64,000 nucleotides of DNA from Vitrella brassicaformis CCMP3155 (taxonomy: Eukaryota > Protista > Chromerida): NCBI GenBank assembly GCA_001179505.1, contig CDMY01000275.1, forward strand, positions 186,001 to 250,000. The letters run 5' to 3'. Of the stretch, positions 63-8,153 are shown one piece after another. Each line of letters begins with the position of its first letter. Position 1 is the stretch's first letter. The notes beneath the pieces were generated by a model. That model did not search any database. It saw only the letters and a program-made list of their open reading frames with translations, and was not told the DNA's origin. The position numbers were made by a program, and so were the translations under genes.

Positions 63-721
63 TTGCGTGAGAGTTCCGAGAGCAGCGACAACTCTGTGGA
101 CGACTCTGTGGTGGACGTCCTGCCACAGCTCCTCGACTACCGCGTGTCGCGGTGGACGCAGGACCCTGACTTCCTCGGCAGCTACTCATTCATACCAAAG
201 GTGGGTAGGTCACCGTCAGCAACGAGGGAGACGACACGCAGCGCAGCCACGGGAGGGGGTGTGGAATGGAATGGTGTGGTGTGCAGGGCAGCGATGAGCG
301 TCTGATCGAGCAGATGGCCTCCCCAGAATGGGACGGCAGACTCATATTCGCCGGTCAGGCAGCGCATCGCATCGCATCGCATCGCAGCACACACACATAG
401 CCAGCCAGACGGGGCGTGTATGCATCTGTGCTGACCCCTTTTGCCTCTGTGTGTGCAGGTGAGGCGACGAGTCGTGTCGGCTTCCAGACGGTGACTGGGG
501 CATGGTGCAGCGGCCTGAGGGCAGCCGACCAGGTCATCCAGGCCATACAGCCACACCTAGCCGTCCCTGCAGCACAACCGTCACAGCAGCATCCTGCTGC
601 AGCAGCAGCCGCTGCTGGTGGTGGCTTCGGCGGGGATGGCGGCGACAAGAGGGAGGACACAGAGATGTCGGTGGGCGGCCTGCCGAGTGGAGATGGGCAG
701 GCAGGTGCTGGTGAAGCTTAG
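63..721 (+). CDS. Flavin-containing amine oxidase (MAO/PAO/LSD1-type), 3' end only
   Basis: Exons 63-200, 287-353 and 459-721 join at GT-AG sites. They give ...YRVSRWTQDPDFLGSYSFIPK-GSDERLIEQMASPEWDGRLIFAGEATSRVGFQTVTGAWCSGLRAADQVI, the typical C-terminal W..DP...GSYS and FAGEAT...TV.GA..SG.RAA motifs. The 5' part lies outside the window. Confidence 0.9.
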
Positions 722-1552
722 TGGACAATTATATTGGAAGGACAGACATGTGCGTGTGGCAGTACAGTACGTGTGGGATGTGCGTGGAGGAAGGCTCACT
801 CACTGCAGTTGCTGACCAGCAGTCGCGAGGAGTGAGTGGAGTGGCGCGGTCCTTCTGTGCCGGACCAGAAGGCACACGCTCGGTGGTCGCTCTAGCTAGC
901 TACGTGTGGATGTAGTTCTGTGTGCGGTGATGCGCTCTTGATCAACCAACCAACCAGTGCATCCATCAACTGCATACTGTCTGCAGGGCGACTGACTTAA
1001 CCCACCACGTACACCCACACCAACGGCTCACCAGACACACTCCATGGTTCCCACGTTGACGCCGTGGCCAAACCGACAAGCAGCAAGGCCGGGATCGAGG
1101 AGAAGCCTTTGTCGCCGGGACAAAGGCGATATGTAGTGGCTGCTGATGCCGCCGCTGCGGCCGTGACGCAGTGCGTGGCCTGGCAGGTTCCGCTCCATCG
1201 GAAGAGCAGCACACTGGATGGCTCGGCAGATAATTCGCTTTGTCCGGAGCGATGGTGAGAACGGATGCGCGAGGGAAAACGGCGGGAGCTTTGGTTTCCT
1301 GGCCGGAGGTGTTCGGTTTCGAGAGCATCTGGCCATAGCCAATTTTGTTACAACGCACGCGTACTTGTATAGCGGCCATTATCGAACACGGCGGGGACTT
1401 CTCATCTTTACTTACCTGTGTGCCGATGACGCGCGCCGGTAGCCCATAAGGTCAGCTGGGAGGGCGCAAGGGAGCGTGTTGGATGGGCCGCACCACCGTC
1501 GCCGTGTGCTGTGTGCCGTGTGTTGTGTATGGCATGCAGATCAGATCGGATC

Positions 1553-4018
1553 ATGGAAGGGCAACCCAACGTCAAATCCAGCGCCCTGCCCAGACGCAAA
1601 CGAGGTCCTCAACCATCACAGCAACACACCACACCGCACCACGCCACACCCCTCTCTCTCTCCGTGTGTGTGTCCATCCATCCCATCCATCCATCGATCA
1701 GGTGGCGAGAACCAGCACATGTCCTCCATCTCGTCCAGCAGTCAGATGAGCCAGGGCAGCGGGGCGGCACCGAATCGCAGCGGGCAAGGACGGGGCGAGG
1801 CGGGGGGCGGACAGAACCGAGGTCAGGCATTGGGTGGCACAACCCACAGACAGACAGAGAGAGAAGTGCACGCACGCAGAAATCGCCAATCACTTCACTG
1901 CCGTCCATTTATTTGTGTGTGCAGGGGGTAGAGGTAATGATGGTGTGTGCGGGGTAGCTGGCACGACCGGCACATCGTTTCGTTTGATCCATCAGTCGGG
2001 ACGACGGTCAACCAACGAGGGACCGGTAAGATGAGAAGGAAGCCAAATTTGATGCGTTCGACGATGGTGGAGCTTCTCCCATCGCAGGTAGGGAGGCGTC
2101 TGTCGCGTGAGGACCTCATTCACATCTCTGGCTATGGCGTGTAGCCGCTCTACAACAACAGCATCGCCACGGAGGCCGGGGCTCAGTGCCGCGAGCTCGA
2201 CATCGACTGCTCCAGGGCCGCCGACAGGGTCTTCTGGCAGGCGATGCCCGTCAACGTGGCTAAGAGGTGGGGCGGCCGCATGCCCAAACTCACCCGCATC
2301 TGGTGCTGTCACCCGGCTGGCGAGGGCGCCTGGTGTCTGGACGCTGTCACGGCGCTCATCGAAGGCCACACAGAGGGCCGCACAGCCATGGTCGCGGAGA
2401 AGAGAGCAGAGGCGGAGAGGCGGGGAGAGGCGGCCAACATCCCCGACGGCTCAGTCACGACAATCACATTTGAGGCGGCTGAGCTGACCGACGCGGACAT
2501 GCTGTCCGTCGGGCGCACCAACCCCACCCTCCCCCCTAGCTGTGCCCAGCCCCCCTCCCTCCCCGCCCTCACATCCATCAGCGGCCTCACTGCCCACCAC
2601 CGTGGCATCGGCAACCGCGGCTGGCGCGCCCCGTCGCTGGAGCGGGTGCAGGCGCACGAGCACATCGACACGCTGGGGCCACTCGTCGGCTCGTCGGGGT
2701 GCCTGAGGGTGCTCGACGTGCCCTCGACGGTCAACCAGAAAGCCGAGGTGATGGAGCAGGTGCCTGTTGCTGAAGAGGAGGGACAGCCGGGGCCGCTGGC
2801 GAACTTGGAGGATATCGGGCCGATTGAGGTCTCCGGCGACGATATTGCGAATTTGCTTACGTTGACGGTCTGGTCCACTCGGTTGCAGGTCAGCAGGCTA
2901 TCACTTTCAAATGGACAACAGATGACGCACTTACTGTGTCTATACTTTTCCTTCCTCAGATGCTGGGGTCGACCCTCGAGGCACGAGGCTGTCGTCGGTC
3001 CCTCAAGTCGCTGAAGGTCAAGTTCATCGACTTTGCGGGTGCGAGCCACTGGGTCTTCGGGTTCGCCGAGGCCCTGCAGACATTCGCCAGTGCGGTGTGC
3101 ATCGGGGACGCCCCGATCAGCTTCACCAGTGCTGCAGGATCGTTCAGCCTGATGACCCTGCACAGCCACCTCTCCCCCCCTGCACCCTCACCCCTCCTCA
3201 AGACACTCATGCGGCAGCTGGCCGACCAGGCGACAGAGGTGGCAGTCGACCTCAGGGGGTCCGACCTCGCCATCCCGCCCACGCCTGCGATGCTCGACAT
3301 GGCCAGAGGCCTGGCATTCAACAAGGCCACGAGTGTGTTTGTGTTGGGTGTCCACCAGCCTGCACCAGCCGCCCCCGCCCCCGCCCCCGCCCCCACCCCC
3401 ACCCACCCGGCCATCGCCATCATCGACCAGATCCAGCCGATGCCGCAACCGTCGCAGCTGGTTCTCAACAAGCAGACGGCATTGGCGGCCGGCACCCACA
3501 TGGCTGACAAGATGCCCAACTTGCGGATGCTGTCCGTCCTGGGCGGTGTGCCGGCGAAACAGGCGTCTGAGGCTATCAAGGCGATCGGGTGTGAGCGGGA
3601 GCTCGACATGGTGGCTGCGATTGATATTCGGGGTGTGGGCAGCGGGGGCATCGACGTAGGGGAGCATAGAGAGGGATTCCCCCAGACGACCACACTGGTT
3701 GTCGATCTCACAGGTGGGTGGGTTGGAGGGTAGACAGTCCCACAAAGACAGACACACAAAGAGACCTGCATACGAATGTCTGTCTGTGTGTCTCCATCAG
3801 TTCCTGCTGGCGTCTCCGACTTCGTCGAGTTCATCTGCTCGAGTACGAGATCGCTGCTGCAGCTCAAGTGCAAGGCGCTGCTCCTCGAGCTGCGGGGCCT
3901 GGACGCGAAGACACGCAGCCTGCTCGAGTCTGCCGTGCCTGCACAGCTCAGCAGCCTGGAGGGCACGGCCATATCGTGCTCGCAGCGAGATGATAAGCTC
4001 AGTATATATGCATCATGA
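1553..4018 (+). CDS. Hypothetical protein, lineage-specific multi-exon family
   Basis: A phase-consistent chain runs from ATG 1553 (MEGQPNVKSSALPRRKR) through long exons (about 2145-2890, 2960-3713, 3801-4018) with coding-like codon usage. No known domain was recognised and the start is uncertain. Confidence 0.6.
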
Positions 4019-5321: not shown

Positions 5322-7241
5322 CTAAGGCGCCTGGCCGTCGAGCACGATGGCTGCGGTCGGCCCGAGGACGCGACGCACCTTGGCGGCCGTCCGGGGGAAT
5401 CGCTGGGTGAAGGGCGCGTCATGAGGGACACCTGCTGCTGGCGCCTCGCTGGTACGGATGGTGACGTGGACTGCATGCAGACAACAGCCGACGACACGAC
5501 AGCATGAGCATATGCTGTGAATATATGTCGATGAATGCGTACCGTCCTGGTTGTTGCCTGGTTGGATGATGAAGAAAATCCATGAGATGAATGGGTCGTC
5601 TGATGACGTCAGCCGATGCGCCTGCCCACACCACCCACTGGCACACTCGTATGCCATCACGTGTGAGCATCCGTTGAGGGGCGCGTGCTGCGATTGGGTC
5701 ATGATGCGGTCGAGGTGGCCACCCCGCACACTCCTGACACACACATCAATAACGCACCACATAGCCATTCGCCCTCTCATTGGGTGCCGTCCATCCACTC
5801 ACCGGTCAACCACCACTGTTGTTGGTGAGTCGATGAAGCCGCCCACAGCCAACAGCCGGTGACGCAGCACCAGACGCTTCAGCATGGAACTCGCCGATGC
5901 GTAAACAAGCCCGTTGTTGGCGCCAACCGTCGCCCAGCCCACACCGTTCTGCCACACAAGGCAGCTGCGGACGGGCGGGTCGTGTGTCTTGGCGTGGTGG
6001 GTGAACGGGTGCTGCGAGAAGGGATGGACGGGGCGGCTGGGGAGGGGGAGGGGCGGGTTGAGTGTGATGGTGAAGTTGGGCTCGTTGCGGATGATCCGGA
6101 CCTCGTTGTTGTTGTGGCGGAACAGCTCGAGTGTGCCGTCATGCTGGCCGGTGGGGCGGCGGAGGGCCACATAGCGACCGACGAGCATCCACTGAGCACA
6201 GAAACGGGGCAGCGCCAAGAAGTCCTGCATCCAACAGCTCACATCCAGCGGCTCTCCCATTGCCTCTTCTGTGTGTCGTGCTTACCGCCTTGGTGGCGTG
6301 TGTCTGCAGATCTGCAGCACCCACAGTGACCGGCAGCTGGCAGTAGCCGCAGTGCTCGGCGACGCTGAGTGTGTCGCCCACCTCCCCCCAGCCGCCCTCG
6401 CCCCCCTCCTCCATCACCCACATGGCCTTCATCACATCGCCGTGGCTCAGCTGATCGTCGAACTGCACCACCCCGCCCACCCTCGCCCGCTCGATGGCCT
6501 TCGGCAGCCGAAGGCGGCGGACGATCGGCCGGAGGGCATTTCTGATGGGCCGGGCTGTCGACTTGAGGTTGGAGACGGTGGTGAGGTCAGACAGTGCCAG
6601 GATGACGCTCATGGGACTGGCGGGAATGTCAGAGATATGCAACAGTCGCGCCTGATGACACACACACAGAAGGACATGCACCACACACGCATAAGAGGTG
6701 CACACCACATCAGTTTGTGTCTTGTGTTTGTGCCTGTGGTCAGTCACTCCCCCACCTGTGTGCGGCTATGTCGTGTGAGTGCGATGGTCGAGTTGATGGT
6801 GTCTGCCAACTCGGCCAGCAGGTCGGACACCGCAGCAAATTGACGACTCACCTTGGCCACCATCTGACGAATGAATCAACACGATGAGAGCAACGCCAAG
6901 CAAAGCAGACTCGACAGACACAGAGAGAGCTCCGTGGTGTGTGGTGTGTTTGGCAGCCTGCCGCACCAGTGGTGCCATCGCAGCTGCTGCGGTGTCCATC
7001 CACAGGAGTTGGTCGATGCAGCTGTTGACCTGCACACGCACACCGCACACACACAAGCAAGCAGCCGATGAGCTTTGGATGCACTGACTGCATGGAATGG
7101 ATGAGGTGGTTGGTGTGTTGGTTAGCTGGCTACCTGAGCCTGCTTCAGCCGATAGACTTGTACCCGGGGCAGCAGCTGCTCCCGTATCGCTGTCATCGTC
7201 TGCAGAGATTCGCATGACAAAGCCACAGACAAACATGCCAT
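5322..7241 (-). CDS. Hypothetical protein of a Vitrella-type expanded orphan family (N-terminal coiled coil)
   Basis: Spliced exons encode IRQMVAKVSRQFAAVSDLLAEL..., ...VVQFDDQLSHGDVMKAMWVMEEG..., WMLVGRYVALRR...LELFRHNNNEVRIIRNEP...HDPPVRS..., ending VRRVLGPTAAIVLDGQAP* (stop 5322). The family is recognised from memory only. Candidate ATGs are 7241 and 7196 (alternative frame 7236/7215). Confidence 0.7.
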
Positions 7242-7252
7242 GGATCAGATCA

Positions 7253-7265
7253 CGCGCTTTGCTCA
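7253..7265. repeat. Target-site duplication, left copy (CGCGCTTTGCTCA)
   Basis: Exact 13-bp direct repeat of 7855-7867, flanking the retroelement fragment. Confidence 0.92.
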
Positions 7266-7854
7266 GGGGGGGGAACTGTCATTAACCGTAACACTCGTCT
7301 GTGTGTCCGTGATACTCATACAAATACAGTCCCATCAGCACGCAGACTCAAACAGGCTCAAGGGGAGGAGGGATCAATTTCCGCCCCATCAGCACACCCC
7401 AGTCCCGCAAACCCTCCCCTCCCTCCCCCACGCAGACAGAAGCTAGTCGCACGCGCGAGGGCGATAGACAAGCGAGAGCGAATCCATCCAGACACATGAC
7501 TGAACCCCCGACCCTTCCACCCCTCCTTCTCCAACAGCGCATGAGCCATGTGGGCGATGAACACGTTGGCATCGTGTCCCCACACACCGTCACACGTCAC
7601 CACCAGAGGGCAGAAGGTCACGCGGGAGTCGCAGACGGCCGAGCGGTATTTCTTCTTCTTGGCGGTCTCGTGCTGCTTCAGGATGGACTTAGTCGATCGG
7701 TTCTTGGAAGCGTAAGACGTTGCGTCAGGATCCGTAATACAGATGTCAAACGACGCAGCCGCCTGCCGCTCCCACACGCCCCGAGCGACGATGTCCGCCC
7801 TGACCCCACCCTCCCCCTCCTCTCCCTCCTTCAACACCACCTCCCGACGCACAC
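7266..7854 (-). mobile_element. 5'-truncated non-LTR retrotransposon (RLE/CRE-like), C-terminal restriction-like endonuclease domain plus 3' UTR
   Basis: Uninterrupted ORF 7852-7358: RADIVARGVW...SFDICITD (PD..D-type core), HETAKKKKY (E..K..KY), F.PLVV..DG..G and GWIRSRLSIALARATSFCLRG. These motifs are typical of CRE/RLE element C-termini. The fragment is bounded by a 13-bp TSD, and the sense 3' end is ...GTTAATGACAGTT-C8. Confidence 0.9.
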
Positions 7855-7867
7855 CGCGCTTTGCTCA
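7855..7867. repeat. Target-site duplication, right copy (CGCGCTTTGCTCA)
   Basis: Exact match to 7253-7265. The ORF frame hits a stop inside this copy, which marks the 5' truncation point. Confidence 0.92.
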
Positions 7868-8153
7868 TGCTTTGCTTGGCCTGCAGGCTTCTATTCCCTC
7901 ACCCGAGTGGTGACGCCGTCCATCCTCAAGGTGTCTGAATCAAACTGATTGATGCTTGGATGCTTCAACAGGCTTTGCTCGTCTCCGTCAGTCATCACAC
8001 TGGGAGCATTCCCGCCATTAAATTCGACGCTGCTTTGATGCAATGAGCTCAGGATCTGTCGCCCATCGTGATTGCATAGCTCACGCCAGGAGAAACGAAG
8101 GAGCTCGAGTGCAAGCTTGAGCTCGCGACTGGAGCGAGGCAGCTGACGTGATT

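Follow-up and report, generated by a model that had tools for sequence, protein, structure and literature searches.

An R2-type LINE family with an oligo(C) 3′ end in the chromerid alga Vitrella brassicaformis

Introduction

How does a non-LTR retrotransposon come to end in a run of C residues instead of poly(A)? The question is raised by an insertion in the genome of Vitrella brassicaformis CCMP3155, a chromerid alga and photosynthetic relative of the apicomplexan parasites. The insertion lies in a 64,000-nucleotide stretch of contig CDMY01000275.1 (positions 186,001 to 250,000 of the forward strand), which was analysed as a whole and is referred to below as the window; coordinates given without a contig or locus name are window positions. 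A preliminary description, made from the sequence alone, had assigned the run either to an RNA that itself ends in C or to a reverse transcriptase (RT) that adds non-templated G when priming, and had regarded both as an unusual priming mode. Here, the insertion, its empty target sites, its relatives and the tails of its sister copies are examined in turn.

Architecture of the window insertion

The insert occupies positions 7266-7854 (589 bp) between two copies of the 13-mer CGCGCTTTGCTCA in the window sequence, one at 7253-7265 beside the 3′ tail of the element and the other at 7855-7867 at its truncated 5′ end. The element is read on the minus strand. A run of G8 at 7266-7273, which is C8 on the element strand, directly abuts the first 13-mer copy, and the second copy has no such run. 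The C8 tail is preceded, in element orientation, by a 3′ UTR of 84 nt (7274-7357) that is conserved in all copies and terminates in GGTTAATGACAGTT, and by the TGA stop codon of the element ORF as judged from its translation (7358-7360). The remainder (7361-7854) consists of the final 164 codons of the ORF, which belong to a restriction-like endonuclease (RLE), together with 2 nt of a cut codon; the open frame proper, with its 164 sense codons, spans 7361-7852. Specifically, this frame retains the family-invariant residues E (7841-7843), D (7793-7795), D (7745-7747), K (7658-7660) and KY (7646-7651), all on the minus strand. The endonuclease C-terminus, the 3′ UTR of about 85 nt and the C8 tail of the preliminary description are thereby borne out. 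The predicted fold of the 3′ UTR is not different from that of shuffled sequences (z = 0.5).

Other genomic copies match insert bases 1 to 589 at 97-99% and then share further upstream sequence that is absent from the window copy; in homologues, the region upstream of the cut encodes the CCHC motif and the RT. Because homologous copies run on upstream beyond its 5′ end, the window copy is 5′-truncated. The two ends of the insert are thus defined by homology independently of the 13-mer repeats, which adjoin these ends exactly, and the probability that this specific 13-mer recurs by chance at those boundaries is approximately 1e-8. Together, the upstream extension of the homologues and the flanking target-site duplication (TSD) agree with the earlier reading of a non-LTR insertion of the target-primed reverse transcription (TPRT) type with 5′ truncation. 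The nearest copies are 99.3% identical to the insert, which is a recent, dead-on-arrival (5′-truncated) copy of a single-ORF LINE of about 3.5 kb.

Paralogous empty target sites

The flanks of the insertion belong to a separate repeated family of at least 40 copies with 68-88% identity and a length of about 535-700 bp. In particular, the left flank (6700-7252) is a member of this family, and the right flank (7868-7990) continues the same repeat unit with 81-96% identity to two paralogues. Many members of the target repeat (window positions 6700-7265 and 7855-7990) are clustered on contig C395 at 232-396 kb, and no Pfam domain is found in its ORFs.

Empty sites were judged from the flank alignment coordinates of paralogues. 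In the first C395 paralogue, the left flank aligns to 262265-262835 and the right flank to 262823-262970; in the second, the left flank aligns to 300412-300976 and the right flank to 300376-300424. In each case the left and right alignments share exactly 13 bp, such that both paralogues have contiguous flanks and carry the 13-mer once, which confirms 7253-7265 and 7855-7867 as an exact 13-bp TSD. Additionally, the alignment to the second paralogue pairs 49 nt with 49 nt at 96% identity, is gap-free and starts at the first base of the 13-mer, so that no G-run stands beside the 13-mer of that paralogue. With a single 13-mer in both empty sites and no G-run in the second, both the duplication and the C8 arrived with the insertion, as had been proposed for the G8.

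These alignments bear on another account of the run, in which it would come from the target, through a preference for inserting beside C/G runs, or would be an artefact of assembly or of the homopolymer. Homopolymers are prone to error and this one sits right on the junction, both of which would suit such an account. The gap-free empty site without a G-run and the exact 13-bp overlaps in both paralogues speak against it. Moreover, in the six family members with a verified TSD (see below), the run is bordered by the UTR on one side and the TSD on the other, and the 5′ copy of the TSD lacks it; a run is present at 99 of 134 independent loci. A target or artefactual origin is, accordingly, scarcely credible.

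A young family and its full-length element

In the Vitrella brassicaformis CCMP3155 genome searched (72.7 Mb, 1,064 contigs), the family comprises at least 160 copies. Among 234 candidates, 42 scored matches show 90-100% identity, and most of them reach upstream of the 5′ end of the window copy. The copies have a common 3′ end and 5′ ends at many different positions. Young copies are 99-100% alike, which supports the recent activity that had been supposed for this family.

The full element was pieced together by an upstream walk through overlapping copies, complemented by a metagenome relative. This relative, L067, is a gap-free public metagenome contig in which the element spans 169-3656 with 92-93% nucleotide identity over 3.5 kb; its ORF (198-3563) has 1,121 codons and no internal stops, and provides the full-length frame with RT and RLE whose recovery had been suggested in the preliminary description. 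The full element measures about 3,490 bp and consists of a very short 5′ UTR, a single ORF of about 1,120 aa, a 3′ UTR of 84-86 nt and a short pyrimidine tail. In L067, two telomere-like CCCTAAA units with one G between them (150-168) lie directly upstream of the element 5′ end.

A young full-length copy is located on contig C591, where the ORF starts at L033:7633 and the 5′ end shared with other copies lies at about L033:7577-7590. Its TSD is a 14-mer at L033:7446-7459 that is repeated directly after its tail. Between the 5′ TSD copy and the element 5′ end, about 117 nt (L033:7460-7576) occur in no other copy and may stem from a 5′ transduction or from capture of sequence at the 5′ junction. 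Two other candidate arrangements were rejected: a 1.3-kb element starting from an apparent common 5′ end at L002:748, which is the truncation point of the query copy, and tandem copies on C16, whose spacer is a scaffold gap.

Four very short copies are internally deleted (C385:257896-258343, C55:135697-136190, C242:140485-140885 and C588:17508-17776). In each of them the first 200-320 bp of the element, including the true 5′ end, are joined to the last 50-200 bp, and the breakpoint differs from copy to copy; these are internal deletions, not 5′ truncations. They recall deletions that have been reported in Hebe, a LINE of rotifers (PMC2861651). Solo 5′ pieces of the element are present in the genome as well, in much larger numbers.

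Target-site duplications and insertion sites

TSDs of 12-14 bp flank six copies, namely the window copy, L007, L021, L025, L030 and the C591 copy. In six longer copies for which both junctions are available (L002, L003, L006, L020, L022 and L024), no TSD is found, even when 400 nt upstream are searched, and integration is therefore not uniform; target deletions are perhaps the cause of the TSD-less integrations. The trinucleotide TCA immediately precedes the duplication in four of the six verified sites, which is a weak hint of site preference in a very small sample.

The 159 3′ flanks collected for the family are mutually unrelated apart from five pairs that resemble one locus assembled twice. 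The comparison of insertion sites that the preliminary description had called for therefore shows dispersal over unrelated flanks. Additionally, the TSD-verified targets offer no base-pairing partner for the C-run, which makes priming without base-pairing likely whether the tail is templated or made anew. Silkworm R2 is already known to prime in this way.

Protein domains and structural relatives

The ORF encodes, in order, a Cys-rich N-terminus, RT motifs including WYADDS, a CCHC motif and a C-terminal restriction-like endonuclease of the PD-(D/E)xK type. The residues C903, C906, H914 and C918 and the residues E951, D967, D983 and K1012 are invariant across 34 relatives. Pfam matches RVT_1 in 26 of these 34 relatives and gives no match for the Vitrella ORF pieces or the full L067 ORF even at E=10. 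In P0001, the RT contains, just before YADD, an insert of about 65 aa that is disordered, acidic and rich in Ser (residues 538-603, pLDDT <40), and the equivalent region is present in L045 and L058; the RVT_1 profile probably misses the Vitrella proteins because of this insert. No Exo_endo_phos match, which would indicate an APE endonuclease, is found in the full-length L067 ORF (1,121 aa) or in the 34 relatives, and no C2H2 or Myb module is detected in the Vitrella N-terminus.

A single-sequence search of the PDB (phmmer) returns nothing. Searched with a family profile, the PDB gives R2 proteins as the best sequence matches, at about 1e-6, and also matches the LINE-1 RT. For a sister-family protein modelled with AlphaFold (pLDDT 83, pTM 0.79), the top seven Foldseek matches are all R2 proteins (2.6e-18 to 1.6e-14). 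VIA alignments of the model to R2 cover 700-730 residues with Z scores of 19-22 and an rmsd of 6-8 Å, and they extend to model residue ~1095 and therefore include the endonuclease; LINE-1 ORF2p scores about equally to R2 in VIA alignment. The element is an RLE-bearing R2-type LINE that is not site-specific.

Hemipteran insects and sponges harbour relatives with 35-50% identity, as do many environmental contigs of 3-4 kb. The N-terminal module is swapped among hosts: CUT homeodomain-type, YEATS and C2H2 modules are seen in relatives (P0012, P0018, P0020, P0043), and the Vitrella module is Cys-rich (CXC-like). Such swapping suggests repeated retargeting.

Census of the 3′ tails

The tails were collected with a 14-nt core, GGTTAATGNNAGTT, as query, with exact matches only, and were tallied by hand. 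The core occurs 160 times in the genome, compared with three times for its reversed control. Two patterns in which the core is extended by 21 bases yielded 159 ends with tails and flanks, comprising 134 ends of the young subfamily (core ending in GACAGTT) and 25 older or other ends.

Among the young ends, 99 of 134 (74%) terminate in C4 or longer. The largest class, with 74 copies, has a T followed by Cn, where n is 2 (one copy), 3 (one), 4 (two), 5 (six), 6 (17), 7 (26), 8 (eight), 9 (12) or 11 (one); T followed by C7 is the commonest tail. Closely related forms are TT followed by C8 or C10 (two copies), Cn without the T (three copies, with C7, C8 in the window copy, and C12) and CT followed by C6 (one copy). 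The second class, TCT followed by Cn, contains 25 copies, mostly with n of 4-5. A further 13 copies end in TCCAC, usually followed by T, and have no long C-run. The remaining young tails are TCCCCAC (four copies), T(T)CAC (three), TCCCTTC (four), TCCCTC-like (three) and mixed pyrimidines (two). The oligo(C) end is consequently a trait of the family and not a one-off. A T adjoins the UTR in 131 of the 134 young ends, so that the C8 seen in the window belongs to a family-wide feature while its pure form is a minor variant of a norm in which T is followed by C6-C9.

The 25 older or other ends are mostly TCCC (seven copies), GTC(TCTC) or (TC)n, and the tail of L067 is CTCTCTC. The tail also varies among copies that are otherwise 99-100% identical; L021, for instance, ends in TCCCTTC. 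When the TCT + Cn tail is compared with subfamily markers, none is linked among only seven informative sites in the last 455 nt.

At seven 3′ ends, A8-A12 stands within 0-3 nt past the tail (C719:193-227, C189:75364-75398, C204:38629-38663, C290:97-131, C588:17508-17542, C1030:286-320 and C77:2744-2778), where far fewer than one would be expected by chance in a genome of 58% G+C. Two of the very short copies with internal deletions carry an A-run after the tail: C588:17508, one of these seven, and C55, with A6. About 95% of the ends have no A-run.

Origin of the C-run

On the pattern of tails across copies, the C8 would most plausibly be the 3′-terminal simple repeat of the family, present in the RNA template, copied with slippage and inherited, and we consider this account better than even. 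Several features point to inheritance. The same non-trivial variants, TCT + Cn in 25 copies and TCCAC in 13, recur at unrelated sites, which argues for a tail passed on through the RNA. That a T nearly always separates the UTR from the run likewise indicates an inherited rather than a fresh tail. Moreover, tail type tracks subfamily age: older elements carry (TC)n and TCCC and the youngest carry long C-runs, even though the proteins hardly differ. Because the TCT + Cn copies share no other diagnostic substitution, inheritance is inferred here from recurrence and not from a subfamily tree. Run lengths vary about modes of 7 and 9, which is consistent with homopolymer slippage either at initiation or later in the genome.

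The tail variation among otherwise identical copies also fits a run made anew at each insertion. In such a scheme the RT would add non-templated G, with an occasional A, or stutter in a telomerase-like manner on a terminal C; the G residues would be added to the nicked bottom strand before the copying of an RNA that really ends in ...AGTT(T). In vitro, R2 RT adds non-templated nucleotides as it primes, and the (TAA)n of the I factor is built during insertion. The tail length that differs among copies 99-100% identical elsewhere, the missing T of the window copy and the targets that offer the C-run no pairing partner would all be accommodated. However, random addition would not give the patterns of the census: discrete variants at unrelated sites, including 13 TCCAC tails that have no long C-run; a T beside the UTR in 131 of 134 cases; and older subfamilies, with elements about 93-97% identical, that end in TCCC or (TC)n and not in long C-runs. 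Synthesis of the run afresh at each insertion is thus unlikely, with the proviso that one form of it, stutter on a templated terminal C, is inseparable from an inherited repeat by these data. If the RT did build the oligo(C) while priming on the nicked target, through reiterative copying of a terminal C or preferential addition of non-templated G, which we think doubtful, Vitrella would host an R2-like LINE with a new priming mode; to our knowledge, such a mode has not been described for any LINE.

The seven A-runs raise a different option, in which a different LINE, dependent on poly(A), would have made the copies from polyadenylated mRNA in the manner of processed pseudogenes, and the C-run would simply be the sequence immediately upstream of the poly(A) site. 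The A-runs, including those on the short deleted copies, would be as expected from such an origin, but about 19 in 20 ends show none, and the TSD directly follows the C-run in all six verified cases. As an explanation of the family it is very unlikely; it could apply to a small minority of copies, not to the window copy. For the A-runs themselves, their position suggests that the mRNA is polyadenylated just downstream of the tail; alternatively, they could reflect insertion into A-rich targets.

The element entered a member of another repeat family by target-primed reverse transcription. The bottom strand would be nicked and cDNA synthesis would begin at the 3′ end of the RNA, and a top-strand cut about 13 bp away would give rise to the 13-bp duplication. 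Under the preferred reading of an inherited, templated tail, the C-run, normally T followed by C6-C9, would belong to the RNA template and be copied, with slippage of a few bases, as reverse transcription begins, and daughter copies would inherit the tail. The mRNA would be polyadenylated just past the C-run, with the RT usually starting at the run and rarely in the poly(A).

Of the two sources named in the preliminary description, the C-tailed RNA is therefore favoured, since the recurrent variants look inherited, and non-templated G is disfavoured. The unusual priming mode attached to both is not supported by the present data, as many LINEs that lack poly(A) are known to carry a simple-repeat tail that is inherited and is copied with slippage. 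What is unusual is the repeat unit of a single C, and only that.

Comparison with known elements

LINEs are usually divided into two groups, one priming on poly(A) and the other recognizing its own 3′ UTR and carrying a short tandem-repeat end. Tails of the latter kind are found in the I factor, (TAA)n, in Dong, (TAA)n, and in eel UnaL2, (TGTAA)n; they vary in copy number between insertions and are needed or rebuilt when reverse transcription initiates. Like these elements, the Vitrella family has no poly(A) and ends in a simple repeat whose number of units varies. Unlike them, it has a repeat unit of a single C, which goes back to a (TC)n-like ancestor. With its more than 160 copies, a young family in a chromerid alga that ends in a C homopolymer can now be set beside both kinds. 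In full-text searches of the literature, no description of an oligo(C) or poly-C tail on a LINE was found, nor anything relevant on Vitrella LINEs or on CRE/Ambal/Odin.

Two features define the CRE clade (CRE1/CRE2, SLACS and CZAR): RT phylogeny and insertion into spliced-leader genes. The Vitrella family shares with it the RLE-bearing, single-ORF architecture of early-branching LINEs; in contrast to CRE elements, it is dispersed and does not reside in spliced-leader RNA genes. For this family, labelled CRE-like in the preliminary description, R2 proteins are the best structural matches. The likeness to R2 (R2Bm, avian and turtle; PDB 8gh6, 9nl2, 9nl3 and 9dou) extends to the single ORF with an N-terminal nucleic-acid-binding module, RT, linker, CCHC motif and PD-(D/E)xK endonuclease, to the lack of an APE endonuclease and of LTRs, to TPRT-type insertions with 5′ truncation, and to structural matches that are the best obtained and cover almost the full length. 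Unlike R2, the family is not specific for 28S rDNA, as its 159 unrelated 3′ flanks and the unrelated repeat around the window copy illustrate, and it differs in its 12-14 bp TSD, its Cys-rich N-terminus, its sequence identity of 13-17% and its T + Cn 3′ end.

Five RLE clades have been listed, among which HERO holds many families that are not site-specific (Kojima & Jurka 2015, PMC4640811), and NeSL/Utopia relatives are widespread among eukaryotes and vary in their N-terminal zinc fingers (PMC4640811). The Vitrella family resembles these HERO- and NeSL-related RLE LINEs in that its relatives in insects, sponges and protists carry swapped N-terminal modules. An oligo(C) tail is not mentioned in the text of that study, which was searched for the word ‘tail’ (PMC4640811).

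The Vitrella insertion is an ordinary TPRT event, and what is new is the C-homopolymer tail on a known kind of element. For annotation of the Vitrella genome, the present analysis delimits a full element of about 3.5 kb with both ends and a TSD of 12-14 bp. Additionally, the tails T + Cn, TCT + Cn and TCCAC form a natural series for studying how R2-type RTs choose their start site. R2-type proteins are under development for gene insertion, where the 3′ tail of the RNA determines efficiency, and such work could be informed by a relative that initiates on a C-run unpaired with its target.

Among more distant relatives on metagenome contigs, A-runs or the repeats (TAA)n, (GAA)n and (AGT)n are found 100-200 nt past the stop codon. 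These runs resemble tails and are suggestive of putative element ends.
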